From NCBI GenBank assembly GCA_010909165.1, contig MU008172.1, forward strand, positions 1,302,001 to 1,366,000: DNA of 64,000 bases, written 5' to 3'. The stretch comes from Anthoceros angustus (taxonomy: Eukaryota; Plantae; Anthocerotophyta). Below are positions 1 through 33,404 of the stretch, in pieces (position 1 is the first letter of the stretch; the number at the start of each line of letters is the position of its first letter). The notes beneath the pieces are model-generated. The model made no database searches. It saw nothing but the letters and a program-made list of their open reading frames with translations, and was not told the DNA's origin. The translations under genes and the position numbers were made by a program.

Positions 1-1090
1 TGAGCGTGAAGTACGAATTCTCGGAGCATGGAATCATGCCGGATGGTTTGTCCAGGAAGGGCGGGCTGTTTTTCTCCATAAAGCCGCACCCTATTGCCTA
101 AGGGAAGGCATCCGTACAAACTTGGGCCGGACGAGATCCGACTGTCTCGGTTAAGGAGGTCGCCATGGAGGTGCAACAAGGCGAGGAGGAGAAGGCCCTA
201 GGGAGGTGGACACTATTCGCAGTGACCGTTAAGAAGATTTTGAATGCGGTTCGGTGGGCTACGATGCAAAAGGATGTGTGGAGTTCACCGGAGGTGTGAT
301 GCGTGTCGAGGGTTGCCCACGTTGTCGACACAATGGCCTCTTACCTACATCTTACCTAGCACCGCTCGAGAAGTGGGGAATCGATTTCAGACCAATCAAA
401 CCACCAACGCAATGGACGAGGAAGCGACATTTTGGTGGCTACGGATTATTGTAAAAGATGGTGGAGGTGAAGCAACGAGGAAGGACGACCTAGGAGGAGG
501 CGACGTAGTGCGCACAGGAGGAGATTAGAACGTGAGGGGCGTTCATGCCCGATATTTGTTGAGCGTGAAGTACGAATTCTCGGAGCATGGAATCATGCCG
601 GATGGTTTGTCCAGGAAGGGCGGGCTGTTTTTCTCCATAAAGCCGCACCCTATTGCCTAAGGGAAGGCATCCGTACAAACTTGGGCCGGACGAGATCCGA
701 CTGTCTCGGTTAAGGAGGTCGCCATGGAGGTGCAACAAGGCGAGGAGGAGAAGGCCCTAGGGAGGTGGACACTATTCGCAGTGACCGTTAAGAAGATTTT
801 GAATGCGGTTCGGTGGGCTACGATGCAAAAGGATGTGTGGAGTTCACCGGAGGTGTGATGCGTGTCGAGGGTTGGGCGGCCTCGTTGTCGACACAATGGC
901 CTCTTACCTACATCTTACCGTTAGCACCATTCGAGAAGTGGGGAATCGATTTCGTGGGCCAATCAAACCACCAACGCAATGGACAAGGAAACAGTACATT
1001 TTGGTGGCTACGGATTATTGCACAAAGATGGTGGAGGCGGACGAGGAAGGACGGCCTGCTGGCAAAATTTTTATTCGAGAACATCGCACG
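1..1090. repeat. Tandem duplication of ~559 bp inside the integrase
   Basis: tgagcgtgaagtacgaattctcggagcatgg occurs at 1 and 560, followed by near-identical sequence; the first copy has extra deletions. Confidence 0.9.
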
Positions 1091-1685
1091 GTGTCCTTTG
1101 GAGTTGGTTAGACCAGGGGACACATTTCCTCAACTCGTTGAGTCCCTAACCACCTATTTTCAACATTCGCATCGAAGACGACCCCTACAACCCCAAAGCG
1201 AATGGATTGACGGAGAAGACAAATGGGTTGCTGTGCACAATCCTCACCAAGGTAGATAACGCATGTATGATTGGGATGCTAAGTTGCATTCGACCATGGG
1301 CCGCGAGGAGGAGAAGGTAACCACCAAGAAGACCCCTTATTATCTAACGTATGGCATGTCACCTGTGATGCCCGTGGAATTTGAAGTACCTACCTACAGG
1401 ATCATGGAGGATGAACGCATGACTGTAGAGGATAGCCAGGTAGCTAGACTAGAATCGTTCATAGAGCAGGAGGAACGTAGGGAGGATGCTTTAGAGGAAA
1501 CCCAGCGGATTCAGGAACTCAGGAAGGACAGGCATGATGGGAGGTTGAGGAAGCAAGAGACTATCGTGGACGGGGATTTGGTTCTTCTATATGATAGTCG
1601 ATACCTAGACTTTCCAGGGAAGCTTAGGCTAAGATGGATGGGACCTTACGAGGTGGTCGCAGTATACGAGAATGGATCGTGGTAA
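1..1685 (+). mobile_element. Degraded Ty3/gypsy integrase (HHCC remnant, core, GPY/F domain); truncated at the window start and interrupted at ~1686
   Basis: Frameshifted translations give PFEKWGIDFVG, ILVATDYCTKMVEA, TPYYLTYGMSPVMPVEFEVPT and GDLVLLYDSR...KLRLRWMGPYEVVAVYENGS. Confidence 0.9.
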
Positions 1686-2028
1686 CCAGTATTGGGAAGC
1701 GGGCGCTCGGGGCGCACGGCTCAAGCGGTCGAGGCCGGCATCCGACCCGGGCGCGCGCGCGCGTACGAAACGGCCGAGGCCGGCGGTAGGGGTCGAGACC
1801 GTTCTAGGCCGCGGCGCCCGACGAGCCGCTCCCTCATGTAAGGGAGCGGCCCGGGCCGAGACGCGCCTACCACTCGACTTCGCATCGAGGCGAGCCGAGG
1901 TCGATCTTTAGAATTGTTGCCTTGTGCAACCACTTAAAAGTCTTTTTCTCTCTTTCACGCCACTTTCGCACTTCAGTTTTCACTTTCACTGCACGCTTGC
2001 CTTTTCACGCTTTTGGGATTTATCCTTT

Positions 2029-3674
2029 CTAACTTTCTTCTCGGGCGTTGAAGGGGTGTACACCGCGATTTCGGATCCGCCTGTCTTGAATAATACTTCT
2101 TTGTTCATTATACGGTCCAGATAGAAAGTTAATCATTTCGAAAATTTCGTCCAAACGGGAATATTTCTGCAGGCAATGGTAAATGTTAGATATCGTACAT
2201 ATTAAATTTCACCACTATAAATATGATATACTAACCTCAAATAGTGCAAACAACTCCTTTTGATTCTTCGATAACTACAAACAAAAAAAGCAGTTAATAT
2301 TTTACCTCCATCTCAAGTCGAAGAAGATCTTGCTCAGTAAATACCTTTCTCACTAATGTGAGGCAATGGCTGTGAAGATTTCCCACACTACGGAAATGTG
2401 ATTGGACGTTCTGCAAAGAAGTATCAACGTTAGAATTTGCATATTTGGTAAATACGAATATCAATATTTTCCTTGTTTACATAAATAAATTGTTACGAAC
2501 TAACCTTTTGAATGTTTTTGTAGTTTCGGATCTTCCATCGAGTCAACAAGTCCGTGGTTTTAGCTCCTTATTTTCAATGGTCGATATTTCTACATTACCA
2601 AAACTCAAATTTCATTAGTACTACATAAACCGATTCAAGAACTATACTAAGAATAATATAAACCGATAACACTTACTTTTTGGATCTCCATGTCGCTCTA
2701 GGGTTGTCGACCCATCTTCATTCATTTCATTGGCTGGATCTTTGAGGCTATGTTCCCAAATGGGAACATATCTATTTTAAAATCTTGGAAGACTTGTGGA
2801 TACGAAAGTTATCCATCCATTTTCCAAAATCGCAAATTCTTCGATGGTCCATACGTTGGTGCATTATCTCTTCTTTTTCCTCTTTTGTCCTTTGAAAACA
2901 AGATTGTAAGTTATATACTACTTACAAATATACTAATTATTAATTACAAACATACAACAGCAATTACGATGAAAGATGTGTTGTTGATTTTGTCATCCAT
3001 TGCTTCAATTTTCTCCTTAATTTCCTTAGTCAGAACTTGTTCAAGAGACAGAACAAGGACATTAGTATTTATTACTGTAAACAAATACATATAATCGAGT
3101 TTAGTTGTTTACCTCCAAAATCGATCGAATTGAGATCTTGTCCATTAAACCTCCCACTGAGTCATTGTTTCCAACTCTAATTGAGCCGTTGTTCGGAGAT
3201 TCTTCTTAATATCCTGTAACCATATACAACTAAAGTGAGTTGCGATACCCCCCTGAAAGTTGCGAACCAAGTCTTTACCTTTTTAATTTTTTCCTTAGCA
3301 CCGCAAAGGAGCTGCAAGTCCTTTTGTCCATTGATGTGAACATAGTGTGCTCAGTACTTGTATCAAAGATATCGAGTTAGAAATGTTCATGGAGATTCAA
3401 TTCGAGATTAATTGAAATGTATTACCTTTCTCAACTATCTTCGTATCTCAATGAGAGGATTTGAACTTCACCATCATATCCTGGATCCCCATGGGTGGGA
3501 ACATTGTTGTTTGATCGCCATGTTAAGGTTTGTTGGTCTTTACTATTGTCGCCACTGAAAAAGTCATTTTAGCCATGGATTCATCAACCAAAAATGGATT
3601 TGGCTGAGGCGTAAATGATCATTACCTTCTTGGATGTCGACCATTTCATCGTTGCTCTCATTCTCGGATGCCAT
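2029..3674 (-). CDS. 10-exon gene of unknown function (gene A); a few frameshifts or stops in this sequence
   Basis: Hand-spliced exons 3674-3626, 3554-3426, 3311-3279, 3213-3113, 3074-2968, 2889-2677, 2589-2505, 2410-2306, 2274-2236, 2166-2029, all joined by GT...AG introns. Starts MASENESNDEMVDIQE. The last three exons splice in frame: NVQSHFRSVGNLHSHCLTLVRKVFTEQDLLRLEME|LSKNQKELFALFE|KYSRLDEIFEMINFLSGPY...REES*. Confidence 0.7.
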
Positions 3675-3797
3675 TCGCAATAAAAGCAATCCGTGCCAAT
3701 GAATAACTTGAACTTTTGAAAATGCACGAGGCTGCAGCCATCACGCGCAGTTGTCTTGCTGGTGCGCATGTTGTCCGCATGCGCGTACTTTCAGCTG

Positions 3798-5470
3798 ATA
3801 AAATATACTACGGCAACACAAAGATCGGATATGACTTACGCTAAATGGTTTCGCGCCTCTAAGATATTCGGACATGCAATTTCATTCGAATAGTTAGGAA
3901 AAACAGAAATAAAATATGATTATGGACTTTTGAACCGTCGAGTGATCCAATATCAAGAAAGCGCCCGATGCATGCCACGCTTAACGCGCAGGCGGCATGC
4001 CTATAAATACCTCGCATAAAGTTGACTCGACGTTGTCACGACGCGATGTTGACTCAAACATTGTTGAATGACCACGCCGACTCTAGCTACATTTTGAACC
4101 CGAGGTTTAAAGACAATCGTATGCCTAAGGAAAGGATTTCATTGCATGCGATGCAATTTATAGGTTGAGACGAGCGGTTAGCCTCTCTTGCATGCAGTGG
4201 TGCATACGCGCGCGCTGAGTCACTCAACGGGTTACGTCCGGATGATTAACCGAGATTAAGCGAGAATAAAGAGAGTTAAGCGAGAAAAGCGGATCGAGAA
4301 CTATCAAGACTTGTTAGCGCATCGGTCGAGTAGCGCGACTTTCAGATAAAATATACTACGGCAACACAAAGATCGGATATGACTTACGCTAAATGGTTTC
4401 GCGCCTCTAAGATATTCGGACATGCAATTTCATTCGAATAGTTAGGAAAAACAGAAATAAAATATGATTATGGACTTTTGAACCGTCGAGTGATCCAATA
4501 TCAAGAAAGCGCCCGATGCATGCCACGCTTAACGCGCAGGCGGCATGCCTATAAATACCTCGCATAAAGTTGACTCGACGTTGTCACGACGCGATGTTGA
4601 CTCAAACATTGTTGAATGACCACGCCGACTCTAGCTACATTTTGAACCCGAGGTTTAAAGACAATCGTATGCCTAAGGAAAGGATTTCATTGCATGCGAT
4701 GCAATTTATAGGTTGAGACGAGCGGTTAGCCTCTCTTGCATGCAGTGGTGCATACGCGCGCGCTGAGTCACTCAACGGGTTACGTCCGGATGATTAACCG
4801 AGATTAAGCGAGAATAAAGAGAGTTAAGCGAGAAAAGCGGATCGAGAACTATCAAGACTTGTTAGCGCATCGGTCGAGTAGCGCGACTTTCAGATAAAAT
4901 ATACTACGGCAACACAAAGATCGGATATGACTTACGCTCAAACCGGTTTTGCATGCCTCTAAGATATTCGGACATGCAATTTCGCCCAACGAATAGTTAG
5001 GAAAAACACGGTTAGAAATAAAATATGATTATGGACTTTTGAACTTCGCCGAGTGATCCAATATCAAAGTCGCTGGCCGATGCATGCCACCGCAACGCGC
5101 ATGTTGCGGCATGCCTATAAATACCTCGCATAAAGTTGACTCGACAAGTTGTTGAGACGATGTTGACTCAAACATTGTTGAATGACCAATCGACTCTAGC
5201 TACATTTTGAACCCGAGGTTTAAGACAATCGTATGCCTAAGGAAAGGATCATTTGCATGCGATCGAAATTTATAGGTTGAGAGCAGGCGCAGTAGCCTCT
5301 GATGCGTGTGGCTGCACACGGGCGATGGAGTCACTCTTGAACGGTTACGTCCGGATGATTAACCGAGATTAAGCGAGAATAAAGAGATGGTAAAACGCCA
5401 AGCGATCGAGAACTATCAAGACTTGTTAGCTTTGGGGTCGAGAAGCGACTTTGAAAACGGAAACGAATCA
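3798..5470. repeat. Three tandem copies of a 548-bp unit
   Basis: ataaaatatactacggcaacacaaagatcgg at 3798, 4346 and 4894 (exact 548 period). Copies 1 and 2 are essentially identical; copy 3 has extra bases. Confidence 0.95.
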
Positions 5471-5548
5471 GAAAGATAAGTTCGCTAATTAGGCTTACTG
5501 CTCCCCGATGTCTTCTTGCGTGGACTAAGGGCCGTGTGTAGAGGAGTC

Positions 5549-6030
5549 TCAGGTTTTCTGCAGCAACATTCAAGGTAAGAAAGATGCTTGCAAGCAAACT
5601 TACAGCGATAAGGCTATTCACAAGCAAAGACTGAGGCAAGAGTGCGCGAGACCGAAGCGAGGCGCAAAAAGAATAAAAGACGCCGACGTAAGAGTGTTTG
5701 TCGTCGTCCACGGAGGACGCCAAGGCGAGACCTCTTTGTCTCCTTGGCGCTGGTGAGCGGCTGGCAGACCGTGAGTGGAAACCGTCGCCGAGCGGGAAAA
5801 TCGGGCACACTAAGTTCTTGCACGAGCCCAACTCTTCCGCCAAGTTCGGAACCTTCCAGTGGTATCCTGCAGATGTCAACAAAACATGAGCATAGGCACA
5901 AAGGCAAAGACGACAAACAATTTCAAAGGCAAACAAACTCACCGGCCAAGTTTTCAATTTCAATCGCCGCCTTCAAACGTGTTTTCACCTCCGAGGGCCA
6001 CCACCGATGATGAGGTATGTATTTGTACGC
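5549..6030 (-). CDS. Spliced gene of unknown function (gene B); 5' exon unresolved
   Basis: Exons 6030-5943, 5866-5688 and 5630-5604 join in frame across GT-AG introns: AYKYIPHHRWWPSEVKTRLKAAIEIENLA|GYHWKVPNLAEELGSCKNLVCPIFPLGDG...DDDKHSY|SLLVNSLIA. A further acceptor at 5558 gives a stop at 5549 as written. Confidence 0.55.
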
Positions 6031-6359
6031 CTGAACCAAGGCGAAAGCCACCGGGAGTGTGTTTGATCCGGGCGGACGTCGGGAGAAGGCAAACAAACTC
6101 GCTATTCACTACGAGAAAGGAAGAAAAGGGCGCGTGGTGGGCGGTAGGGCGAGGAACAACCTTGCCGCGAGGTGAGCAATGGACGAGAGAAAGGAGGCAC
6201 TGTCATGCAGGGCGGTAGGGCGAGGTAGGAGCGAACCAGCAGCTGAGCGATGGAACACCAAGAGGACAGCGGGCTGGGCCGAGCGAGTGACGGCCATGGA
6301 AGAAGGTAGAAGGGGGGAGCCTAACGCGCGTGGTGGGCGGTAAAGTAAGTCCGAGGCGT

Positions 6360-6635
6360 GAGTGCTCCTTAAATAGACTTGAATTAGGGTTCGATGCTTA
6401 AGAGCTTGCGGCGGGTTCATTGGCGAGGTTTCGCGCCGCTAAGATTGGAACAAGGTTAGGTGTTGCATGGCTAGGTTTGGAACAAGGTGACTAGGTTCGG
6501 TTGAGGAGGCGCGGCGAATGGCGATCCTAGGTTGGTTTGGTGTCCCTAGAGAGTAGGTTTGGTATTTTCAAATTCGGTGAGAGAGAGTGGCTGACAGAGT
6601 GAGAAGGGTTAGGGTTTGGTGGCCTATATAAACGG
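6360..6635. promoter_or_regulatory. Candidate bidirectional promoter between gene B and the YR gene
   Basis: TATATAAA at 6625-6632 (+) preceded by a telo-box-like GGGTTAGGGTTT; TATTTAA at ~6369-6375 on the minus strand preceded by AACCCTAAT (6383-6391, -). Confidence 0.4.
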
Positions 6636-8845
6636 GTTCACGGACCTCTTTGGTCTTTTTGGTGCTGGGGCTTGGGACCTTCCAGGCTTTCTCCTTCGCC
6701 GCCTCTGCCTCCCTCTACTCCCTCTTTTCTATGTCCCTACGCACACGCTTGACGTCCGATTTCAAGGTTGTTTCGCCAAGTTTCATTCAGCTTTTGTCCG
6801 AGGCCAAGGCGTTGGTTTCTCACTTGTTGCGGTCCGGGCCAAGGTGCTCGCGCCAAGGCGCTTTTGTAAGGTCCAGCCTCCTAGCCCCCTGTTTTTAGTT
6901 GCCTAGCTCTTAGCGTTTCTTTGCGCCTGCCTTGTGGTGTTGCATCATGTCGGGTGATTCTGTTTCGTCTTGTTAGCTTGCCCGGACTGTCTTCTGTAGT
7001 TGGTCAGAGTCCGTTTCCAAGGTTTGATGTGCTTTCGACGGCCGAGGAGTTCTGGTTTCGTTGTTCCTTCGTGGTTTCCTTATGTTTTACGCTTTATGCT
7101 TTCTGGTCCGAAGGCCAAGGTCTTCTTTGTTATTCAAGGTTTCTTTCATTGTTGTTTTGTTCGAGGTCCAAGGGTTTTGCGTTGTCAGTTGTTGCTGTCC
7201 GAAGGCCAAGGTGTCTTGTCGTAACCTCTCATGCGTTTCTGACTATAGTTGTTTTAGCACTCGTTTGTTCTCACTTGCCTCCCACCGCTTGTCCGGCGTG
7301 CGTTTTTTGTGTGCTGCGTGTCTGCTCGTGTTCTCATCTTGTTATTTATGTTTGTACCTCATCATCACTTCCACGCCAGCCGACGGTGAGGCCGCTTTGT
7401 GTGCGCTTGTGAATATGTTATTTTTGCGCCTTGAGCTTTTCTTTTGTGGTATTTGGCCTCACATGTTAATGTGTTGTCCGCTTGTTCACAGCGTTATTCA
7501 CGCTCAAGAGCACGAAGTGCCTTGATGATGTGTAATGTCTTGTCGTGTTTGTCTTGTGTTTTCATCATCTCTGCATTTTCTATATATGCTATGTCGTTTT
7601 AAATGGATCATTTTGTTTCGCTTGGTGTTTATCTCTGTTTAGCTCACGTGTCTGTTGGTGTTTATCACCGACTAGTGTCTTCGTGACGTGTGTTATCTTA
7701 TACTCTCATTGTTGTGTTCTTCTTTGTGAAGTATAAACATTGTCTATCTCGGATACGAAGGCATCGAGCGTGCGTTACGACTTGATTGTTTCTTGACTTT
7801 TGTACATTAGCTCGTCTCTCAAAGTGTTGCGTCCTTAACTCGGTTGTGTTTACGTTATTTATGCTCTTATTTTTCAGTAAGAGCTTGCTTGTTCCATGCA
7901 TCGCGCCTTTGGGCAAAACATTTTAAAGGTATTTGTCTTTTCGATTGTTGTTCACATGTGCGGACAATTATTTGTGGTCTCATGAGTTATCGCTTGCTTT
8001 CTCGCCTTGATGTGTGCGCCATCGCTTGTCCGCGATGGAAGGTAGATCACTTTTGATCTTTTGCTTACCGCTGTCTTTGCTTATCGATGTGCGTGACGCT
8101 TGTTAGTCACCTGTTGTTTCTAATTTGATGTGTGTTTAGTTTAGTGTTTTATGTCGACTTTTGTTCTTGTTGATTGCATCATGTGCTCGTGGTTTGTCTT
8201 TTTGGTCATGGTTGGTGTTGCGGTCCAATGTGGTTCTTGCGCTATGTTAGTTTCATCGATGGTTTGTTGTTAACTCTTGCCTTTTGTGCATCACCCACGA
8301 GAAAATTCTTAGGGTGAATTCGTGGATTTTAGTAAGAGATGTTTACCCTTGCCTTTTGTTTTTTGTCTTGTTGTTCTTGCATAATCAAAATATCCGCACC
8401 TCACTAAATCGTTTCATGTAGGCGAAATTTGTCATCGTGTGAAGGGTCGCTCTTCCAACATTCTAAGTCTGTGGGTATCGTGATAACTATTTGCCCGAGT
8501 TTCTGGTGTTTTCTTCAGTGTTGACCGAGGCTCAAGTTGTGTGTGTCTTTTGTCATCAATATTATTGGCAAAAGAGTGTTTGTGAAGTATGTGGGTTTGT
8601 TAAAAATGGAAGTTTCGTTCTCTAACTTAAAATGGAGGGATCAAAATCTAACGTGTATAGATCAAAGGATGTGTCTCGCAATATCTCCCATGCCTCTTCT
8701 TTTCGATTGTGGTATAATCAACTTTTAGACCCTTCAGAGTTCTCATTTGAAAGCATTCACCTCCATGTAAGTCTTTTCATATTGGTTTGCAAGTTCATTA
8801 ACTTTTCAAATGTTTTTGTGTTTTGATCACATGCTTTTCTTTGCG

Positions 8846-11800
8846 ATGGCACCCAAAAGGAAACCCACTGCTTGGACCGGAAAGAAGCAAGGGTCCTGTC
8901 AAGTCATGGCTAAGCCGCACACTAGGGTGTCACCGCCCTCCACATCGCAACTCATCCACCGCAGGATGATGGTAAAGTTGATGGTGTCTTGGTGCAGTGA
9001 AGGAACATATTTAGTTCCAAAAAGGCATTCCTAAACCGCCAAGGCACTTCTCATCCAAGAAGGATGCTCGACGTGAAGTTTGTAAGAGAAGAAGGGTTGA
9101 CACTCGACTGTGGCATTGGTTGAAGGTCCTCTTGGAGATTACTAACTATGTCCCGTTGTCTCGAGAGAGGGTCCGGTTGTGGGGGAGAATGATTTCTTGA
9201 TAACGACGATCCCATGGTTGTGAGGCCGCCAAAGCCTCGAGTCTAGAGATTTGTGTGGTTGAACTTTTACTGGTGGCGCTTTCCATGCTTTGGTTCCCGA
9301 CCGAGTCATCCCCGATCAAGAAGTGCTCGATATGTTTGAGAGGCTAAAGTGTGCCGGTCCCAAGATGACTTTGCCATGGGTATGGAGGAAATTGATGATG
9401 AAGAAATTTTCGAGAGCGTGATTTGACCGTCCCCGTGAGGGAGCTGTGAATGATGCTTTGAGTGGTGGGGAGGATAGGTCAAACGCGTAATAACCGTGTC
9501 AAGTCGCCCTGTGGCCTTTATGAAAGTGAGTGGGGTCGGATGGGATACTGCTTGAGGATATTCCTTACAAGGATCTAAATCTTATTCGATACCCTTTTTC
9601 CATCAAGTTCGAATCAAGGACAACAGGAGATTTTCTCGTAAACGTAAGTAGTGATGTTTTCTTACTTGTTGATTTTGATAGTTCGACTTTCCTTCACATG
9701 ACCGATTCCGATCTTCACTTGTGCGGTGATGTCTTTCTTTCGTGGTTTAACCGGATTTTAACAAGGAAGTGCATCCCAACCAAAGCCGCTTGGTTCGATG
9801 TTCCTGATCAACTTGTTTCATGGAATTTTCCATGGCCTGTCAATGGTTGCGTCCATGAAAATCAAAGGACCTTGGGATTGTGTCATGTCGAAAAGAGGTG
9901 AAGTTGATTTCTGATGATGATGAGCGACTGATTCTTTCACACAGAGATCATCAATGCTCATTTGGGCGGGGGGCTCTGAAAAGGTAATATTGTTGGTTTT
10001 GGGGGTGCACTTTGATTGTTCATTTATGGTCTCTTAAACCTGGAGCCCTTATGCTTATATTGTTTGCAGGTGTGCATATTTTTGCATGACCAGGTTTGGA
10101 GTTCGAGGTGGTGAAGAGTTACATAACCTGCTCATTAGGGACTTCTCATTTGCATCGATTCAAAAGGACCTTTTGTTCAAGAGGGTGTAGTCTTTTGTTC
10201 TTGTTTGTTTGATGTTTTGATGTATCAGATTGAGCTCGTCTTCATTTGCGTGTATGAAGAACGATTCAAAAATTACAAAGTGGATATGAAGAACTACGAG
10301 TGAGCATTTCAAAAGGTCAAGATCTATGAAAAGGACGTCATCGAAACCTTTAAAGCTGTTATTGATCACTCTCCCAAGTGGTCTGCACATGACAAGAATT
10401 TGTCAATTCAGGGGTTTCTCTTCAATTCAACCATTGATAACCCAAGATCCAATGTAAGTTTTTGGTTTATTGGGCTTGAGTTTTGTGGTTTGTATTTACT
10501 AACTGTTTGTTTTTTGTTCAGGCTTGGTATGCAAAACTTCGTGTTTCAAAAGGAATGTTGTCAAGATTTATGAAGACCATGGTGAAGTAGCTGGGCTTGT
10601 TGGCTACTACACCAATAAGAGCTGCCGTGTAACGATGATTACACGTTTGACGATGGCTCAGGTGCCCTCTGATGCTGGGAGAAGTGTGACTGGCCATAAA
10701 ACGGATGCTGGATTTTCAAGGTAATATGTTGTGAAAGCTTGTGACATTTGAGTCTTTGTATGCTCGTCCTAACGTTCTCATATGTTTTGCAGATATGACC
10801 GTTCTGGTCAAGCAAAACAGGCAGCTGCTGCAAGAGTTCTTGTTCCTGGTGAACGACGATCTTATCAGGAGCTTTTAAATGAAGAACTCAATCGGATGCA
10901 GGATGATTTAAGGGGTGTTCTTCCGTCAACAGTGTTGAATGTAACTCCTGAAATAGTATTTTCGAGTCAGCCTGAAGATCAGCGTCCCTTGCAAGTGCAA
11001 CACGTTAGTAATGTAAGTGTTTGAGATTTGTATCAAGTATGTAGGGACTTGTGTCAAAATCGTGTCGACTTGTTTGATGTGTCTCTCGTGGCTACCTCGT
11101 TATTCATCATGAAAGGCACGAACAATGTTGGACCGAATCGAGTTTTTCCGCACCATGTGGTCCACGTGTCTTGAAGTTCGTTGGTATTGTGAAGTTGCTT
11201 TGTTGTAGTCCGCCATGTTAGTTTTTTTTAATCATACTGGTTCTTGTTTTTATTGGCAGGCACCTTCTGAAAGCTGTTGCCAAGGCATCCAGATGGACAC
11301 TAGCAGACCAACGACAGGGTGTTCTACTGAAATTCCATATGTTGACAAGGTTGATTCTTTGGCTGTTTGTTGTTTTCATTCATTTTGGAGTTTCCTGATT
11401 GTGTTCTTCTTGGCAGATTGTGAATCCTTCGACTAGTTTAAGCTTACGTCCCTCATTTCAACATTGACACGAGGGAAGTGGATGCGCCCTCCGTTGGAGG
11501 GCATTGCAGTGAGTGTGATCCATCCGAAGTTAACCAGACAGTGTGGCCGTGGTAGCACCTCGATATATTGCACGGATCGCAAATGGAAATGTAAGTGGCT
11601 TTGAGCGCTTGCCGATCTCCCGAGAACGGAATTGGAGAATGACAAATTGAAACAGAAATGGAGTTCGTGCAAAAGGATTTGGAGGCACTTATAGAGAGAC
11701 AGAGGCGCGTTGAATTACGAGTCTCTAAGCAAAGAGAGAAAGCCCTTGAGATTCGTGAGGCGAGAAATGCGGAGAGGAGACAAGAGCATATTAAGCATCA

Positions 11801-12141
11801 AGAGAAAAGGGCGCAGCAGAAGAGCGCAAGAGGTTCGGAGATTGGGGAAAGACAACAGGAGCAGAAGGATGTGCCTCGAGATATGTCAACTGCTATCTGC
11901 GAAAATCCGTCGGGATCGGTAAGCTTTATGCTTTTATTAATCAGTTTTACTAGATTGAAAATTAATGGTTGTGTTGTTTTAGGTTGTGACCTTGCAGGAA
12001 GATGGTCAATTTCGCCCAAGTCCTCAGCTTCATCAATTGGTTGCCAATTATGATAATGCTGTACAAGTACCAATCAAGCCAAGTGGTCGTGAAAATTACA
12101 TTTTCAATCTGTATAATTGTACAGTAAATTTCCCAAAATAA
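8846..12141 (+). CDS. Intron-containing Crypton-type / DUF3504-like tyrosine recombinase; frameshifts and one in-frame stop in this sequence
   Basis: Spliced translation gives FFHQVRIKD (core-binding), CAYFCMTRFGVRGGEELHNL (R at 10104), YEERFKNY (K), AWYAKLRVSKGMLSRFMKTM, AGLVGYYTNKSCRVTMITRL (R at 10626), VTGHKTDAGFSR|YDRS (H at 10695, Y at 10794) and C-terminal FNLYNCTVNFPK* (stop 12139-12141). Introns include donors at 9644, 9984, 10185, 10454, 10721. The order and spacing match the R-K-HxxR-H-Y YR catalytic set. ATG at 8846 is inferred. Confidence 0.85.
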
Positions 12142-13088
12142 GGTGAGTATCAATGTTTTTATTTTTAGTGTTTACTAGTAGCAGCGTAATTGAGGTTTGG
12201 GTGCTAATTTTGGTTTTGTTTGTAGGTTTCTTGTTGAAGCGAGTTCACTATATCGGTATTTACTCTTCATTAGTTGAATTCAGATTTCATGCACGGATAT
12301 ACAGGAAACTCGCAAAGAAAAGGTTCTTTGTTGGTTTTTTGTATATCCTGGATCCGCATGAATATTATTTAACAGAAAATGTTTTTGTCAGATTAGCGAT
12401 TTTGGTGGGATTTCTAGAATGAGCTTACTAGACGCACCTGGTTTTCACTTGGTCGTCATGTTTTCTACTCTAGTGCTCTGTTTTCCACCTTGATGGTAGA
12501 TCATATTCACCCCACTTGGCATGTTTTCTACTATATTGTAATGAATTTTACTATACTGTGTAAAATAATGGCCAAAAGGTCGATTCTCTCTTAAAATTCA
12601 CCTGCACTACCCCGAAAAAAAACCAACGGTAGCGTGAGGCCCCTGCACGAGGCAGCGACTTCCACGATTTTACGTGGTGCCGACCAGAGTGAACGGGTGG
12701 AAGGTTAAGAAGTACCTTCAACCCAAGGTACCTGTTGTTTGCGAGGACGCAAACAGGTGAGGAGGGGAGTATGTGGAACGCAAAAGTTTGGGCAACCAGC
12801 CCAAACGAGCCGGAGGGAGAACGAACTTGATTTTTTTTTGGCTAGGAACGATTGAAAAGAAGCATGCCAGGAAATTTCTGAAAGTCTTGGAGCTAGAGCT
12901 GTAAAATATTGTTAGGAAGACGAAGAGGATATCCCATGAAGAAGAACGTCAAAACCCCCATTTGCGCGCGGGGAGGGCAGTCCGAAGGTTGGTAGGTCGG
13001 CGACTATCACCGAGGGTCGCCACACACGCCCGTAGGTCAGAAAGAAGGACCATGTAAGTGGCAGACTACCATAGAGACGAACCTCGCA

Positions 13089-16000
13089 AAAAGGAAATTA
13101 GGATAAGGGGGATATCCACTATGCTCACCAATAGGGAGATAATAGGATTAATTAGAAGGTAATTAATTTGAGGTCATGGATAGGAAAATAGGTAATTGGC
13201 GTGCTTGGTAATTTAGGATGTTGAACCGGATCTAGGGTTGGGAACTCCGTGGCGCAATCCAAGAGGGCAAAGTGCAATTTGGCGCCAACTTCCTTCGAAT
13301 CGAGCCAACTTACTCGATCGAGCCGAGCGTAACCACAAGGAGAAGGAAAAGGAGGGAGAAGTGTAGACTGCCATCGCCATCGCTGTCGCCGCCATCTACG
13401 CCCAAGAGGAAGACGGTCCGCGAGCTGAAGAAGGGAAGGAAGCCCAATCATGGCGGAGCGAGGAACATCCGACAAAGACCGAGGAAGCTGCTCGGCGAAG
13501 TGAGAAGCACGCCAAGCACTGGAGAGAAGAGCCGACGGAGGGCCCCCAGAGCAATCAAGTGAAGGCCGGAAGGTCAAAGAAAGGAGCTCCACACGCTTCA
13601 CCGCCCGCGCCTTGCGGAGGAGAAATCGCGAAGGGGAAATTGGCGCCGTGGTTCGCACTGTGGCTAACGTTTGTGCCTGTGTTGGGTGTTGCTCCTAGTG
13701 ACAAGGAAGGTTGGTAGGTCGGGACTATCGCCGTGAGGTACGCCACACCACGCCCGATGGTGGGAAATGAAGCGACTTCGTGGTAAGCTTGGCGAGACTA
13801 CCACGATAGTGTGTCAGCGTAAAAGGAAATTAGGATAAGGGGGATATCCACTATATATGCTCACCAATGGGGAGGCGACCAATAGATTAATTAGAAGGTA
13901 ATTAATTTGAGGGCTGCGGATAGAGAAAGTAGGTAATTGGCGGGGCTTGGTAATTTAGGATGTTGAACCGGATCTAGGGTTGGGAACTCCGTGGCGCAAT
14001 CCAAGAGGGCAAAGTGCAATTTGGCGCCAACTTCCTTCGAATCGAGCCAACTTACTCGATCGAGCCGAGCGTAACCACAAGGAGAAGGAAAAGGAGGAGA
14101 AGTGTAGATCGCCATCCATCGCCGCCGCCATCTACGCCCAAGAGGAAGACGGTCCGCGATCAAGAAGGGGAAGGAAGCCCAATCATGGCGGAGAGGAAGA
14201 CATCCGACAAAGACCGAGGAAGCTGCTCGGCGAAGTGAGAAGCACGCCAAGCACTGGAGAGAAGAGCCGACGGAGGGCCCCCAGAGCAATCAAGTGAAGG
14301 CCGGAAGGTCAAAGAAAGGAGCTCCACACGCTTCACCGCCCGCGCCTTGCGGAGGAGAAATCGCGAAGGGGAAATTGGCGCCGTGGTTCGCACTGTGGCT
14401 AACGTTTGTGCCTGTGTTGGGTGTTGCTCCTAGTGACAAGGAAGGTTGGTAGGTCGGCACTATCACCGTAGGTCGCCACACTACGGTAGGTCGAAAGAGC
14501 GACTACCGTGGTGTTGGCGTCATCAATGGCAGACGACAACTCTCAAAAAGGAAATTAGGATAAGGGGGATATCCACTATATATGCTCACCAATAGGGAAT
14601 AAATTAATTAGAAGGTAATTAATTAGGAGCGGGCGGATAGAAAATAGGTAGTTTAGATGCTTAGGTAATTTAGGATGTTGAACCGGATCTAGGGTTGGGA
14701 ACTCTCCAGTGGCGCAATCCAAGAGGGCAAAGTGCTTTGGGCGCAACTTCCTTCGAAGAGCAACTTCGCGACCGAGCCGAGCGTAACCACAAGGAGAAGG
14801 AAAAGGAGGAGAAGTGTAGACCGCCATCGCATCACGCCGCCGCCATCTACGCCCAAGAGGAAGACGGCCGCGCGAAGGGGAAGGAGTAGCGAGCGGAGCA
14901 AGAGAGGAAGACATCCGACAAGGGTGCCGTGCGCGAAGTGAGAAGCACGCCGCCAAGGAGAGCCGGAAAGCGAGGAGGGCCCCAGAGCAAAGGCTGAAGG
15001 CCGGAAGGTCGGGGAGCGGAGCTCCACACCGACCGCCTCCGGAGGAGAAATCGCGAAGGGGAAATTGGGCCGGGTTCGACTGGCTAACGTGATTGTGCCT
15101 CAGTTGGGTGTTGCTCCTAGTGACAAGGAAGGAGTGCTTGGGAGTGAAGCTTTGGAGCACAACGCTTGAATTGGAAAGTAATTTGGAAGTAAGGAAGGTG
15201 CCATGCCGCCGCCTGAAAGGCAAGGGAAGGAGCCGCCAAGGGTTCCTCAGGAGGAAGGAGAAGAAGGCGGCAGCAGAGGCCGCCGGGGAAATGAAGCGAC
15301 TTCGTGGTAAGCTTGGCGAGACTACCACGATAGTGTGTCAGCGTAAAAGGAAATTAGGATAAGGGGGATATCCACTATATATGCTCACCAATGGGGAGGC
15401 GACCAATAGATTAATTAGAAGGTAATTAATTTGAGGGCTGCGGATAGAGAAAGTAGGTAATTGGCGGGGCTTGGTAATTTAGGATGTTGAACCGGATCTA
15501 GGGTTGGGAACTCTCCAGTGGCGCAATCCAAGAGGCAAAGTGCAATTTGGGCGCCAACTTCCTTCGAATAACTTCACTTCGATGGGCTGGGCGTAACCAC
15601 AAGGAGAAGGAAAAGGAGGAGAAGTGACCCATTGCCATAGCCGCCATCTACGCCCAAGAGGAAGGCAGTCCATGATCCCAGAAGGGGAAGGAGGTGGCCA
15701 AGGCATGGCGGGAGCGAGAGGCATCAGCCGGACAAGCGATGCGAAGTCTTCTCCTCAGCGCAACTGTGAGAAGCACGCCATGCCTGGAGGCTGGGCGAGT
15801 CAGAGCCACGGAGGGCCCAGTGCTCAAGGCATGAAGGCTGGAAGGTCGAAAAAGCGGAAAGGAGCTCCACGGCATTTCACCGTAGGCGCCTTGCCACAGA
15901 GGAGAAATCGCGAAGGAAAGTTAGCGGCGGAGAGTTCGAGACCAGGCTAGCAGTACTTGTGCCTCGGGTTGGGTGTTGCTCCTAGTGACAAGGAAGCGCT

Positions 16001-16150
16001 TGGGAGTGAAGCTTTGGAGCACACAACGCTTGAATTGGAAAGTAATTCTCTTTGGAAGTAAGGAAGGTGTCACGCCTAGGAAGCAAGGGAAGAGCCGCAC
16101 CTTAGGGTTCTTCCTGAGGAGGCAGGAGAAGAAAGTGAAATGCACGCCTT
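13089..16150. repeat. Four tandem copies of a ~730-800 bp unit
   Basis: aaaaggaaattaggataagggggatatccact recurs at ~13089, ~13822, ~14546 and ~15345 with colinear downstream sequence. Confidence 0.9.
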
Positions 16151-19100
16151 GAGGAAATGAGCTTGTAATGCCCCAATTTACGTGTTTTCTGAGGGCAGCT
16201 CAACCCCGTGATTTAGTGGATTTCCGCAATGGGCGTAAGAGGATAATATCCAGTTGGGATGGGTGTATGGCCAATGGGCCTACACCAATTTGGAGTCGAT
16301 TGAGGGCTTCATCAATCTCCATCAATCGTAGGCAGCCCTTGCAGTCGAAAGGAATGCTCGAACGGATCCTCCATTGTTGGACCGTAAGGAGCATTCGGCG
16401 TGTACGGGAGGAGGAAAGCTCGAATTGCTCTCTCGAAAGGTCGAATGGAGGAAGAGGACGCCCTCTCCGATTCCGCAAGAGCCTCGACATGATGGAGGAG
16501 GAAGGCCCATGCCAAGAATGGCTGGAAAAGAGCATCAAGGAGTCAAGTGGAGGCTCTTCAAGATTGTGTTGGGGTAAATTACCAGGACGCCTATTTCAAA
16601 GACCAACTTCGCAATTTTGTGGAAGATTTCGAGAGGAGCCAAGCCGATTGGGGCACCATCATGTATGAGGCCTACATCCACCAGAGAAGCTCCTCAAGCC
16701 AAATTGTGGATGAGGAAGGCCAAGGCTCTACCTTAGCACCTATTTGGTGCATTTGTGGGAAACAAGGGCTTCTCACAAGCAAGGAGTTGGAAGATGCTTG
16801 GCATCCTTGAGATAATCCATCTCCAGCTTGGAAAGGCCTTTGCCTTTGCATTGAGGAAGACAAGGGGAGGTCGACTCCACAAGCATGCTAGGAGCAAGGG
16901 AGGAGGAGGCAACAAGGTTGCCGAGTGGGAATCTTTTCCCCACAAGAGCAAGAGGAGAGGAAGAACCGCCGAGGAAGGCCGAATGGTAGTCTATGAGAGG
17001 AGGACTACCACAGAGGGGTGATGCCCCAAGGGTGGGGAGTCCCCACCATCTCATCTTTGGGAGAGGCACCCCACACCTCACCCAGGGGAGGCACCACCCA
17101 AGGTGCGATCAGGAGCGCCCACCATGGTAGGTAGGCGTACTCACCAGGGGAGCACCACCGCTGTAGGCACCCACGCCAGAGGTGGCCCAGGAAAGGGGAA
17201 GGGGCGCATGAGAGCCGCGGGCGGCGCCGAGGCCACCATCTCCGCTGGAGGAAGAGCGGATGGAGCGACGGTGAGGGACTCCACCGCTGATGGCCGAGGC
17301 AAGAGAGCTGAGATTTCCAGCAAGAAGAAAGTGGAATTGGGCCCCTAGGAGAATTGGCCGAGTGCTTGTGAAGCACTCACCGTGTGGATTTGAAGGGGCT
17401 AGGAGCCAGCCTCCTTGTGGGCCAAGAGGAAGTGAAAGCCCAAGACATGGCCGGAGGAAGGCAGGACCAAGTGGCAATTGAGGCCATGGAGTCCGGGCAG
17501 CCAAATTGGAGAAGGTCAGAGAAGCTCCAACACCTCATGGAGAGCCGAGAAGGTCCTAGAGGGAAGGTTGTCACATCAAGAAAGAGCTATTCGGGCAACA
17601 ACCCAAAGGGACATGGAGGTATATGAGGAGCATTTTGCCCAATTAGAGCAAGAGCGAGGGCAAACGAGGTTAGGAAGGAGAAGCTCCCAAGGACGAAGAG
17701 TGTGTGATGGCTACCCAAGCCATCAAGATCCGGACATGGAAAGGAATCCGGACCTCAATTTGGAAGAGAAGCGCTGAGGCTCAAGACCAAGACTGCAAGA
17801 GTTGGAGCGCGAAAAGAGTGCTTGGCAAGAGAGAGACCAAGATGGCCGAATTGGAACAAAGGAGGTTCCAAGAGGAGGAGCACCACAAGAAGGTGGTACA
17901 CAGGATGCTGGTGGTGAGAAAGCGATTTTGGGCGGACTATGCCCTTCAAAATGGCCAACCAAAGGAAGTGAGGGAGGAGAATGTGACCTCCATGTCAAGG
18001 TGGGGAATTGACCACCCAAGGGACGCCTACAAGGTAGGTGAAGATGGAGAGTGGCCCACTGAGATTGATGATCTCCAAATGCAATATCATAGCTTGGGGC
18101 TCACCTCCACAATAGATTTTGAAGGCCAACAATGAGATTCGCTTGGCCAAGAGGAGGACATTGGGTCCTCATGATGATGACAAAAGGAGTCAGAAGTGTG
18201 CAGAGGCCTCCGATTTTGATGAGGCCATCAAAATGGACTCCGAGGAACTGAGGAGTCGAGATGGGGAGCGCAGAGCGCCAAGGGTGGAAGATGGCGCGAG
18301 AGCAAGGAGGGGGAGCCCACCTCCGGGGTCAACCTACCACGAGGGGTGACCACGTAGTCCGCCAGCACCGTGGTGTGCCACCACGCCTAGTCCGCTGCTA
18401 CCGAGGGCGTGCGGGCGCAGAGCTGGGAGTCGCCGCCAAGGCCCCGGCCGAGGATGAAGGAGCCGGGGGTCCGAGTATACCCCTGAGGAGCAACTGAGGT
18501 GGTGGGGAGACAACCCCACCTGAGGAGACTAAAGACGGGTCCGACCACGAGGAAGGGAGGGGAAGTTCTCCCCACGAAGGGGAAGGCTGTGAGAGAGTCC
18601 AATGCAAAAGGGCCCGGAGTTAGACAGACAAATTGAGGGAGGAAGAACCTTTGAGATGCCCATGATAGGTATGGACAACCAACAAGAGGAAAGGAGCAAG
18701 ATTCCAACCCAAGAGGCCAGATGGAGAAAGAAGGAAAGGGCCGACTACCATGGTAACCACCCCTAGTCCGCCGCATCAGCGGTAGGGTGCGATGACGAGC
18801 GACCAGCAGAGGCTGGAGAAAAGGCGCGGGCGGGAGGGCGCGATTGCCGGGGGACTGAGAACTGGCGCCGCCTGGAGATGGAGGAAGGGGCAGATTGTAC
18901 TTGCCCCACACATTAGGAAGATGACAAGATCGGGAAGGAAGAGCAAAAGGAGGGCGAGGGAGCCAATCCACAAGGAGAAGGAAAGGAGGGAGAAGTGTAG
19001 ATCGCCATCGCCGCCGCCATCTACGCCCAAGAGGAAGACGGGCCAAGAAGAAGGAAGGAGCCCCAAAGCAGGCGTGGAGCGCGAGGAAGACATCCGAGCA

Positions 19101-22100
19101 TGAGAAGTCTTCTGTGAATGAGAAGCACGCCACAATGAGAGTGGAAGCAGCACGACGGAGGGCCTCGCCGAGCAAAGGCGGAAGGGGAAGCTGAAAGGAG
19201 CTCCACACCAGACGGCGCCTTGCCCGGGAGGAGAAATCGCAAGGGAAATTGGCGCCAAGGTTCACCGGCTAACGCGACTTGTGCGTTGTGTTGCTCCCAG
19301 TGACAAGGAAGGAGTGCTTGGGAGTGAAGCTTTGGTCCAACGCTAATTGAGTAATTCTCGCTAAGTAAGGAAGGTGCCATGCCTGGAAGAGCAAGGGAAG
19401 GAGCCGCCAAGGGTTCTTCCTCGCGAGGAGGCAGGAGAAGAAGGCGGCAGCAGGGGCGCCCGCCAGGGGAAATGAGCTTGTAATGCCCCAATTCACGTGT
19501 TTTGCGGCGTACCAACCCCGGATTTAGTGATTTCGCAATGGGCGAGGAGGATAATATCCTGATGGGTGTATGCAATGGCCTACACCAATTTGGAGTTGAT
19601 TGAGGAGTGTTCATCAATCTCCATCAATCGAGGCAGCCTTGCCGTACCGGAAAAGGAATGCTCGAACGGATCCTCTGACCGTAAGAAGCATTCGACAGTG
19701 TATGGAGACCGGAGGAGCTCGAATTGCTTCCTCGAAAGGTCGAATGGAGGAAGAGGACGGCCCTCCGACATTCCGCAAGAGCTCGACATGATGGACGAGA
19801 GTGAAGGCCCATGCCAAGAATGGCTGGAAAAGAAGCATCAAAGAGAGTGGAGGCTCTTTGCAAGATTGTGTTGGGGTTGGTAAATTACGAGGACATTTAT
19901 TTAAGACCAACTTCCTCCAATTTTGTGGAAGATTTCGAGAGGAGCCAAGCCGATTGGCACCATCATGTATGAGGCCTACATCCACCACCGGAAAAGCTCC
20001 TCAAGCCAAATTCGTGGATGAGGAAGGCCAAGGCCTCGCTACCTTAGCACCTATTTGGTGCATTTGTGGAAACGGAAGGGCTTCTCACAAGCAAGAGTTG
20101 GAAGATGCTTGGCATCCTTTGAGATAATTCATCTCCAGCCAGCTTGGAAAGGCCTTGCCTTTGCCTTGAGAAGATGGGAGGTCGACTCCACACATGCTAG
20201 AGCAAGGGAGGAGGATGGAGGCAACAAGTTGTGAGTGGGAATCTTTTCCCACCGAGCAAGAAAAAGAGGAGAGGAACAAGAACCGCCGAGGCCGAATGGG
20301 TCATGAGAGGAGGACTACCAGGAGGGGTGATAGCCCCAAGGGTGGGGAGTCCCCACCATCCCTTTGTGCCTAGCAGGAGGCACCGCCACTACCCCAGGGA
20401 GGCACCACCCAAGTGGGCGGCATCAGTGAGACCACCACGTAGGGTGCACTACCGCCAGGAGCACCTCACCGCCAGTAGGCGCACCCCACGCCAGGTGCAC
20501 ACGGTAGGAAGGGGAAGGAGAAGCCGGAGCTGCCGCGGCGCCTAAGCCACCACCACCCGCTGGAGGAGAGCGGATGGAGCGACGGTGAGGGACCACGCCG
20601 ATGGTCCGCTGAGGCAAGAGAGCTGAGATTTCAAAGAAGAGGGAATTTGGGCCCTAGGAGAATTTGCCGAGTGCTTGTGAAGCACTCACTGCAGGTGGAT
20701 TAAAGGGCTAGGAGCTAGCAGCTTCCTTGTGGGCATGCCAAGAGGAAGTGAAATCCCAAGACATGGCCGGGAGGAAGGCAGGGACTAAGTGGCAGCTAGA
20801 AGCCATGGAGTCCGACGAGAAGGCAGCCAAATTGGAGAAGGCTGTAGAGAAGCTCCGCGACCTCATGGATGAGCGGCGCGCGGGAAAAGTCCTAGAGGGG
20901 AAGATGTCACAAACCGAAGAAAGAGCTATTCGGGCAACAACCCAAAGGGACTCTTGGAGGCAAAAGGCGGAGGAGCATTTTGCCCAATTGGAGCAAGAAA
21001 GGAGGAAGGCACGAGGCATTAGAAGGGAGAAGGTATCGCCAAGTGACGCCAAGAAGAGCGGTGTGATGGCTACCCAAGCCATCAAAATCCGGACATGAAG
21101 GAAGCGGACCCAGACAACTGGAAGAGAGCGCTGAGCCGGGAGGCTCAAGACCAAGAACAAGAGAGTTGGAGCGCGAAAAAGATGCTTGGCGAGGAGAGGG
21201 CTTGCCAAGAGGACTGGAACAAAGGAGGTTCCAGAGGAGGAGCACCACAAGAAGGTGGTACAATGCCGGGTAGTAAGGAAACGAAGATTTTGGCATTATG
21301 CCCTGTGCAAAGATGGCCAACCAAATAAAAGAAGTGAGGGAGGAGAATGTGACCTCCATGTCAAGGTGGGGAATTGACCACCTCAAGGGATGCCTACAAA
21401 GGGGAAGATGGAGAGTGGCCCACGAGATTGATGATCTCCAAATGCAATATCATAGCTTGGGGCTCACCTCCACAATAGATTTTGAAGGCCAACAATGAGA
21501 TCTGGCTTGGCCAAGAGGAGGACATTGGGTCCTCATGATGATGATGAAGGAGCCGCAAGCAGCCTGAGGCCTCGATTTTGATGAGGCCATCAAAAATGGA
21601 CTCCGAGGAACTGAGGAGTCGAGATGGGAGCTCAGAGCCCAAGGGTGGGAAGATGGCGCGAGAGCAAGGAGGGGAGCACCTCCGGGGTCAACCTACTTGG
21701 GGTGACCACCACTACAGTCCGCGCTACCGCAGACAAATTACCACGCCCTAGTCCGCTGATCACCGGAGTAGGGCTGTGCGGGCCAGAGCTCGAGGGGAGC
21801 AAGGCCCGGGCCGAGGATGAAGGAGCCGGGGTCCGAGTATACCCCTGAGGAGCAGAGGTGGTGAGGAGACAACCCACCGAGGAGACTAAGACGGGGTCCG
21901 ACCGAGGAAGGGGAGGGTGAGAAGTTCCCGCCCACGATAAGGGAAGAGCTGTGGCCGGGAGGAGTCCAATGCAAAAAGGCCCAGAAGTTAGACATCACAA
22001 CAATTGAGGGAGGAAGAACCTTTGAGAACGCCCATGATAGGTATGGACAAATTAAACAAGAGGAAAGGAGCAAGATTCACCCAAGAGGCAACAGATGGAG

Positions 22101-22349
22101 AAAGAAGGAAAAGGTCGACTACCATGAAAGTCACCACCCTTAGTCCGCGACTACCGCGTAGGGTGCCGATGACGGGCCACCAGCGAGACGGAGAAAAGGC
22201 GCCAGCGCGGAGGGGGGCGCGACCGATGAAGAGGAATCAGGGCGCCTGAGATGGAGGAAGGGGCAATTGTACTTGCCCCACACATCTAGGAAGGCGACAA
22301 GATCCGGGAAGGGACAGAGCAAAAGGAGGGCGAGGAGCCAATCCACAAG
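15597..22349. repeat. Tandem duplication of ~3.37 kb
   Basis: ccacaag anchors at 15597, 18968 and 22343; aaatgagcttgtaatgcccca at ~16156 and ~19470; colinear ORF fragments in both copies. Confidence 0.9.
16150..18950 (+). pseudogene. Frameshifted accessory ORF of the gypsy element (unknown N-terminal domain, Pro-rich linker, coiled coil); second copy at ~19470-22340
   Basis: Fragments GVNYQDAYFKDQLRNFVEDFER and AMESDEKAAKLEKAVEKLRDLMDERRAGKVLEGKMSQTEERAIRATTQRDSWRQKAEEHFAQLEQERRK are conserved between copies. No gag, PR or RT motifs seen. Confidence 0.5.
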
Positions 22350-24857: not shown

Positions 24858-25210
24858 ACATCTATCAAACAATAAGTGGTCATCTATCCAATAAGTGTGA
24901 ACATCTATCAAACAATAAGTGGTCTATAAAATTGAACATCTATCAAACAATAAGTGCTCAAAATTGAACATCTATCAAACAATAAAAATTGAACATCTAT
25001 CAAACAATAAGTGGTAAAATTGAACATCTATCAAACAATAAGTGGTCTATAAAATTGAACATCTATCAAACAATAAGTGGTCTATAAAATTGAACATCTA
25101 TCAAACAATAAGTGGTCTATAAAATTGAACATCTATCAAACAATAAGTGGTCTAAAATTGAACATCTATCAAACAATAAGTGGTCTAAAATTGAACATCT
25201 ATCAAACAAC
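24858..25210. repeat. 35-bp minisatellite (AAAATTGAACATCTATCAAACAATAAGTGGTCTAT); also at ~28690-29010, ~32260-32320 (degraded), ~35735-36010
   Basis: Direct head-to-tail repeats with a 35-nt period visible at 25021/25056. Confidence 0.9.
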
Positions 25211-26399
25211 AATTGAGAGGATATTGAGCAAAATTGAATATACAAAATAATCCATATTGACCAATTTTAAATATTATAGAACAAACATCCAAGCAATAAT
25301 GAATCACAACAATAATTATGATTGCTCAATAAGACAACTGGTCATCATCTTGATGACTTGATCAAGCTCAATAAGAATTGGATTTGATCAAGCAAAAAAT
25401 CACCACATGCATGATTCAAAATAAAATTGAGATGACTTGATCAAGCTCAATAAAAGAATAAGCATGACTTGATCAAGCTTAAGGCAAAATACATCACCAT
25501 ATGCAACCTAAGCAGGTGGCATCTAAGTCTTGATGACTTGATCAAGCTCAATAAAAGAAATCTTGATCCAATGCATGAAGCAAGGCAGTCATGTTGACAC
25601 ACGACTTCTCAATAGCAAAGAATCGCATACTTAATCAAGGTTTGTAATACACACGGTGGCGGTTAGATGCAATATGGTGGAAGGCAAAGGACTTGTGAGC
25701 TTGATATATGATCAAACTCAAAAGCAAGGCGATGTCAGTGTTGAAGTCTCAATGTGATACTTGAGTGACTGTTGCATGTAAGGGTTCTCGAGTAGCTGGA
25801 ACCACTAAGCCAAACAACCACTTGATCTGATGGCAAACCAATGACCATTGAGGCAATTGAGCAATGATAATCAAGCAAACCAACACTTTGGTGTGTGGCA
25901 TGTTATAGGAAGAAGTGGAACTGCATGTAGTGCAGGTCTTGTGCCTAGATGTACCATGGTAGATGCTTGTTATGACTTCATTTTAATTTGTTACTTTGTG
26001 GATTGCTGATTTTGTATATTTGAGTTTCTGTTGTTGCAACTTCTAATTCTAATTTTTATTTACTATGCTAGTAATCACTATACTAACATGTTGCAAACCA
26101 ATGAAAGTTTGATCAAATACAATTAATTGTAAAGAAGAAGAAGAGGAAGGGGGAATGGAAGGGGGGGGGAAGGGGGGGGGGTTGGGGGAAGAGGAGGAGG
26201 AAGAAGATGCAAGAAGGTGGAGGAGAAGGCCATGAAGCACAAGAAGGGAAAAGGTGGAAGAAATTTACAAGTATGATTGATTTCATATGTTGTATTCTTT
26301 TGTTTTGCAATAGACATAATTTTAAATAAAAATACTAAATAAAATTACAACATGTACAAAAAAATTTATGAAGAAGTTTCATAGTTTTCTAAATACAAT

Positions 26400-26585
26400 T
26401 AATAACGAAGAAGAAGAAGAGGAAGAAGATGAAGAAGAAGAAGAAAGAAGAAGAACAAGAAGAGAAGAAGAAGAAGAAGAAGAAGAGAAGAGGAAGAAGA
26501 AGAACAAGATGAAGAGGAAGAAGAAGAAGAAGAACAACAACAAGAACAACAAGAAGAAGAAGATGAAGAAGATGAAGAAGAAATT
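26400..26585. repeat. (GAA)n-rich microsatellite; also at ~30038-30225, ~33403-33585, ~37050-37230, each preceded by a G-rich tract
   Basis: Long gaagaagaa runs with aac variants; poly-G at ~26150-26190, ~29795, ~33175-33225, ~36828-36870. Confidence 0.95.
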
Positions 26586-30042: not shown

Positions 30043-30077
<35 letters not shown>

Positions 30078-30108
30078 AGAAGAAGAAGAAGAAGAAGAAC
30101 AAGAAGAT

Positions 30109-30152
<44 letters not shown>

Positions 30153-33100: not shown

Positions 33101-33404
33101 ATTTCACATACTAAACTGTTGCAACCCAGATGGGTTTCTGAGTTTCTTTAACCACTAAGAAGGAAGAAGAGGAGGAGGGGGGCAAGAGGGGGGGCGGGGT
33201 GGAAGAGGGGGGGGGGGGAGGAGGAGGGCAAAAGTGAGAGGAGGGGCTCACAATTTGGCAAAGAAAAGGATGAAGAAGTTTATTCAATATCATTTTGTTT
33301 CTTATATTGTTGTAAACAATTTAAATTTTATATTTAAATGCTAGTGAAAAATTCACTACACAAAAAAATTTATGAAGTTTCAGTTTTCTAAATACAACAA
33401 CTGT

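Follow-up and report, generated by a model that had tools for sequence, protein, structure and literature searches.

A probable dead Crypton-like element in a Ty3/gypsy integrase of Anthoceros angustus

Interruption of the Integrase and Edges of the Block

The window analyzed here, a 64,000-nt stretch of DNA from Anthoceros angustus (Anthocerotophyta; assembly GCA_010909165.1, contig MU008172.1, positions 1,302,001 to 1,366,000), contains near its left end a block of about 11 kb that interrupts the integrase gene of a Ty3/gypsy retrotransposon and carries a gene for a tyrosine recombinase (YR). The insertion into a retrotransposon gene is real, and the block is most likely a dead Crypton-like element. 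It was assigned to this type because it possesses a recombinase and a short repeat at its edges, and has no reverse transcriptase and no long terminal repeats (LTRs). What is new is that both edges could be placed, each with a copy of a 6-bp repeat. The coordinates of the features, numbered within the window, are given in Table 1.

The plus-strand frame ending at 1682 reads ...WMGPYEVVAVYENGSW and is followed directly by a stop codon at 1683–1685. The right-hand frame, with its start at 12641, reads ...VVPTRVNGWKVKKYLQP... and was also quoted as ...VVPTRVNGWKVKKY..., and both integrase parts are read in one run in a second copy at 39007–39167. By local alignment, positions 1635–1681 corresponded to 39007–39054 (38 of 48 columns), and positions 12675–12800 to 39080–39190. 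Both halves were similarly diverged from this reference copy, as expected if they belong to a single family and to one copy that was interrupted. The result was in agreement with the original prediction, according to which the block split an integrase and was younger than the retrotransposon, as a pre-existing integrase is interrupted at one point. The nearest Atlas clusters of the left piece (1260–1682) carry PF24626 (SH3_Tf2-1) and are found in Streptophyta, and the interrupted part is predicted to be the C-terminal SH3-like domain. Zinc-finger and integrase core motifs were legible in three frames of the left flank; a Pfam scan of the frame-broken integrase pieces gave no match. Furthermore, the integrase was deep up to about 1700 in X1, one public run of short contigs, and the depth was zero at 1801–2200, although holes in such contig data prove nothing. 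The end of the depth near 1700 indicated that the gypsy family generally does not run on into the block. The integrase at 1–1057 was legible only with several frame changes, and a tandem duplication of about 560 bp was observed in its core (1–491 versus 560–1057, 94% identical).

The same six bases, CGTGGT, were present at both edges. For a single locus, the probability that six bases would match exactly by chance within ±3 nt of both edges was estimated at about 1–2%. The limits proposed earlier, 1686–12660, lay within 3–15 nt of the block as now bounded by one repeat on each side (1684–12672). When joined at CGTGGT, the two halves were one base out of mutual frame, and a 1-nt gap was found in the left flank relative to the second copy, just 5' of the repeat. 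No terminal inverted or direct repeats of at least 14 nt were detected in the block. Two other candidates were rejected: the repeat AGCG/GGnAGCG, which was not located at the edges, and a similarity judged by eye to continue beyond the TAA, as far as about 1702 on the left and from about 12666 on the right, whose score was equalled by 90–95% of shuffles.

Table 1. Positions of the block, its flanks and the features within it.
Feature	Position	Strand	Remarks
Left flank: decayed Ty3/gypsy integrase with frame-broken core	1–1683	+	Motifs in three frames, SH3_Tf2-1 clusters, alignment to 39007–39054; 3' limit in first half of C-terminal SH3-like domain
Left CGTGGT direct repeat	1678–1683		At edge of flank homology; read directly from sequence
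Inserted block	1684–12672		10,989 bp; 10,995 bp with one repeat copy
GC-rich (70%) left-terminal segment	1684–1915		Unique in window
Inverted repeat, 13 bp with 6-bp spacer, 12/13 pairs	1822–1853		Unique in window; 140 bp inside left end
Putative spliced gene A	~2029–3790	-	GTAA-type donors; possible start MASENESNDE at ~3676
Tandem array, three units of ~548–565 bp	3781–5452		3797–4096 and 4345–4644 100% identical
TATATAAA, then CT-rich leader	6625–6632	+	Possible recombinase promoter
Crypton-like tyrosine recombinase gene, intron-rich, many small exons	8846–~11012	+	Homology
Recombinase exons with homology	~9883–9939, 10069–10184, 10211–10453, 10522–10720, 10793–11012		tblastn and tblastx against P0004–P0009, L001 and L010
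In-frame TGA	10301–10303	+	Exon collinear with coding sequence that is uninterrupted in L010 and L001
Frame change	10576–10590	+	Spliced frame (from 10522) meets TAG at 10588–10590; homology resumes in another frame from ~10575
ORF with ETEMEF motif and charged coiled-coil-like run	11643–12050	+	
Right CGTGGT direct repeat	12673–12678		
Right flank: integrase frame end, then long GC-rich LTR-like region	12675–23404	+	~720-bp tandem repeats; ends ...CCACA
Second copy: uninterrupted integrase tail and LTR-like region	39007–44054	+	70–80% identical to first
GC, guanine plus cytosine; ORF, open reading frame.

Recombinase Gene

The exons of the recombinase gene shared 40–55% identity with the relatives P0004–P0009, L001 and L010. 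In the homology searches with this gene, its exons were used one by one. In a HMMER search of 1.84 billion representatives, the exon at 10503–10721 matched P0004 with 52% identity; there were four matches in all, two of which were repeat proteins and were taken as chance. In turn, P0004 gave the small family P0005–P0009. Of these, P0008 scored 30.4 bits on PF00589 (Phage_integrase; cut-off 27.1), and three other relatives fell slightly under the cut-off. At an E value of 0.1, PF12012 (DUF3504) matched none of P0004, P0005, P0006, P0008 and the single window exons, and a Pfam scan of the single exons gave no informative match to other domains either. An exact look-up of ten window ORFs in the protein collection found none present, and two metagenome scans with alignments of the family matched patterns, none of which was confirmed. 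The gene of P0008 (L001 and L002, on JGI metagenome contigs) was found at the same locus, beside an alcohol-dehydrogenase-like gene, in at least 10 metagenome samples. It resembles a gene that is fixed in single copy in one plant, and is perhaps domesticated.

The exons were tested for the catalytic set R ... H-x-x-R ... H/W ... Y. The residues were Arg (in RGGEE) at 10104–10106, KSCR at 10617–10628, His at 10695–10697 and Tyr at 10794–10796, and thus the set was complete save that Lys replaced the first His. Box II was K-x-x-R, not H-x-x-R, in every plant member of the family (P0004–P0009, L001, L010 and the window at 10617–10628). The plant box II reads TNKSGR, compared with TNHSLR in the animal protein P0001; type IB topoisomerases likewise have Lys. 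Among the Atlas look-alikes of the N-terminal half of L010, the nearest were DUF3504/QRICH1, diatom/oomycete, NDC10_II and DUF3435 clusters (DUF3504 score 0.96, 186 features), the neighbourhood of Cryptons.

As judged from its reading frame, the recombinase copy is dead because of an in-frame TGA and a frame change (Table 1). The frame-changed exon is preceded by an intron of 68 nt (10454–10521). The copy is broken and lies within a retrotransposon, and is therefore not a domesticated host gene. Upstream, TATATAAA and the CT-rich leader may represent the recombinase promoter. Downstream, the ORF at 11643–12050 is possibly the last exon of the recombinase rather than a third gene. Its ETEMEF motif and charged run occur in the same order as in the C-termini of the relatives. 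As a recombinase C-terminus, the ORF was not significant: its score was equalled by 4–24% of shuffles for five of the six relatives and by more than half for P0006. A homology search with the ORF 11658–12050 also gave no match.

One Element or a Composite

It is slightly favoured that the whole block is one Crypton-like unit, now a fossil, and it is very probable that the Crypton-like recombinase unit, taken separately, belongs to the inserted DNA. The block was read as the product of one insertion event because there is a single break in the integrase and a repeat at the edges. The circular form of a Crypton-like transposon would have been integrated by its own tyrosine recombinase, or by that of a sister copy. 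The crossover would have used the short shared core CGTGGT and would have taken place in the 3' end of the Ty3/gypsy integrase, in the part coding for the SH3-like domain, and both the host element and the insert would have decayed later. The element would be a divergent pair, with the recombinase on the plus strand (promoter near 6625, ORF from 8846), the second spliced gene on the minus strand (~2029–3790) and a repeat-rich spacer between them. We infer a single movement of the whole 11 kb, a crossover at the repeat and the inclusion of gene A in the element.

Several observations weigh against the reading of the block as one unit. In X1, the segment 2201–3400 was present at a summed depth of 140–450 with 80–99% likeness, and nothing was found at 1801–2200 or 3401–6000. 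This pattern is better explained by a separate, abundant nested repeat than by uniform copies of a single element; it also fits copies of the family that have gene A and are without the spacer and the end. Furthermore, the comparison within the window gave no further copy of the block or its ends, and the loci of the relatives (L001, L002, L010 and L011) share only the recombinase exons with the block. Gene A had no homolog, and none of its pieces matched Pfam. At the edges, 25 nt of the second gypsy copy (39055–39079) were unmatched on both sides, either because the gypsy lineages differ there or because DNA was lost at insertion, and another mechanism could have produced the 6-bp repeat as a target-site duplication.

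A composite block is the strongest alternative, although it is distinctly the less probable one. The Crypton-like element that entered the integrase would then have been smaller, corresponding roughly to the recombinase unit, and the segment 2201–3400, the 548-bp array and the GC-rich end would have come by later nested insertions or local amplification. The uneven representation in X1, with 2201–3400 deep and its neighbours absent, argues for such an origin, as do the very heterogeneous GC content of the block, the compact loci of the relatives (recombinase exons within about 4 kb, nothing else in common with the block) and the two 100% identical units of the array, which indicate recent local change. 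However, no target-site duplications, terminal inverted repeats (TIRs) or LTRs were found that would bound an internal insertion near 2200 or 3400, and the holes in the contig data do not show absence.

It is unlikely that the recombinase is a passenger in a block placed by filler DNA at a double-strand break or by ectopic recombination between gypsy copies. The 25 nt of integrase that are unaccounted for would agree with this origin, as would the dead state of the recombinase. In addition, the truncated end of the second gypsy copy lies only 47 nt upstream of the insertion point (39007 = 1635), a hint that the site may be fragile or prone to recombination. However, a 6-bp direct repeat at both edges is a mark of insertion mediated by a recombinase or transposase, and it would be unusual for filler DNA to reach 11 kb and include a whole recombinase transcription unit. 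An assembly artefact, in which mis-assembled repeats joined the block into a gypsy copy, is very improbable: the region is repeat-rich and the only run found consists of short contigs, but, after a chimeric join, the integrase would not resume in the same codon region 11 kb further on, with a 6-bp repeat on each side.

With the reading as a single Crypton-like fossil retained, the claims first made for the block were affected differently. A mobile YR element had been proposed, and the type of element is upheld by the Crypton-like recombinase and by the edge repeat, which fits Crypton-type integration; current mobility was not supported, because the recombinase gene is broken, and the unity of all 11 kb was weakened by the presence of 2201–3400 in X1 without its neighbours. 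A block of three genes had also been described. Homology supported the recombinase only; gene A is a model without homologs, and no third gene was found. The cargo-bearing architecture put forward as a novelty has precedents, as two-gene Cryptons with a C48 peptidase ORF have already been published for CryptonF/S (PMC3212892).

Comparison with Known Systems

Cryptons are rare, poorly bounded transposons. These DNA transposons were reportedly described by Goodwin et al. in 2003. They have no TIRs or LTRs and carry terminal direct repeats of 4–6 bp, which are thought to be recombination substrates (Kojima & Jurka 2011, PMC3212892). Some possess a second ORF, such as the C48 peptidase of CryptonF/S (PMC3212892). 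The element CryptonF-1_cRei from Chlamydomonas reinhardtii is active; its ends are CACCG, its target is CAYCG, and recombination takes place between the two (PMC9977147). Direct activity of Cryptons has been observed only in Chlamydomonas (PMC9977147). Our literature search found no paper on Cryptons in land plants.

Like the Cryptons, especially the two-ORF CryptonF and CryptonS of oomycetes, the block has a tyrosine recombinase as the sole recognisable mobility enzyme, no TIRs or LTRs, and a short repeat at its edges. Moreover, some Crypton families have a second ORF, and the N-terminal half of the protein resembles DUF3504/Ndc10, according to the Atlas look-alikes of L010. However, the block is about 11 kb long compared with a few kilobases, its gene is intron-rich, the host is a land plant, the plant box II is K-x-x-R, and the second gene resembles no known sequence, C48 peptidases included. 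CryptonF-1_cRei also belongs to the green lineage, and its 5-bp terminal motif with a near-identical target can be set, by description, beside the CGTGGT at both edges here. Its mobility was observed directly, whereas the present copy is dead and its mobility is inferred.

The DUF3504 proteins, namely the Glomhopper CryptonA and the domesticated ZMYM, QRICH1 and KIAA1958 (PMC13465315, PMC3212892), are similar in the type of N-terminal domain and in the C-terminal catalytic half. An animal protein of the TNHSLR...TGHRS type, P0001, was 34% identical to a window exon over 50 aa. Unlike the DUF3504 proteins, the plant relatives match PF00589 only and not PF12012. DIRS, Ngaro, PAT and Starship elements are likewise eukaryotic elements that use a tyrosine recombinase. 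However, the ORFs of the block lack the reverse transcriptase and RNase H of DIRS/Ngaro/PAT, and there are no split or inverted terminal repeats; compared with Starship, the block is far smaller and has no DUF3435 captain at one end.

It is conceivable, at somewhat less than even chance, that the block represents an undescribed lineage of land-plant Cryptons, in which the second gene would be divergent and conserved, the active site would have Lys in place of His and the 6-bp crossover core would be CGTGGT. If so, it would be the first Crypton insertion with resolved boundaries from an embryophyte, and the equivalent of its empty site would lie in the same window. A copy inside a recognisable gene, together with a related uninterrupted site and a 6-bp repeat, allows a concrete guess at the ends and the crossover site of the plant family. 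Its value is limited, as the copy is dead and the multi-gene or cargo claim is unsupported; it is a useful fossil rather than a working element.

Other Features of the Block

The spliced-ORF search for gene A gave a score of 572, compared with 248–439 in shuffles, which is weak. The 548-bp array and the GC-rich end were absent from the X1 contigs, and nothing recognisable was found by the ORF scan at 5450–8800. The inverted repeat at 1822–1853 has the geometry of a core site of tyrosine recombinases; such a role is speculative. Scans of the window with Rfam and for tRNA gave no match, so that the GC-rich end corresponds to no known RNA. Among about 30 ORFs of the block, Pfam detected no reverse transcriptase, RNase H or DDE transposase, although small exons could escape. 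The GC content along the block was 0.70, 0.37, 0.45, 0.53 and 0.43, and neither tblastx nor sensitive blastn detected similarity between the block and the rest of the window.

Surroundings in the Window

By self-comparison, the order in the window was the integrase, the block, an LTR-like region, a macrosatellite, and the second integrase tail with its LTR-like region. The second gypsy copy starts 47 nt upstream of the split point, and either an LTR starts inside the integrase frame (with TG...CA ends, TGGATGG... and ...CCACA) or the spot breaks often. A reading of this copy as a solo LTR flanked by a target duplication was rejected, since its flanks do not repeat. Both LTR-like regions end in ...CCACA. 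The macrosatellite (23406–39007) exactly fills the interval from 23404, where the first LTR-like region ends, to 39007, where the second integrase tail abruptly begins. It consists of about four units that are 82–93% alike, with a period of 3.6–3.9 kb, and each unit contains about 180 bp of (GAA)n as well as minisatellites of 30–35 bp and 57–63 bp. The first LTR-like region is about 10.7 kb long and contains nested tandem repeats at 12984–22349, with units of about 720 bp at 12984–16000 and a 3.4-kb duplication (15597–18974 and 18968–22349).

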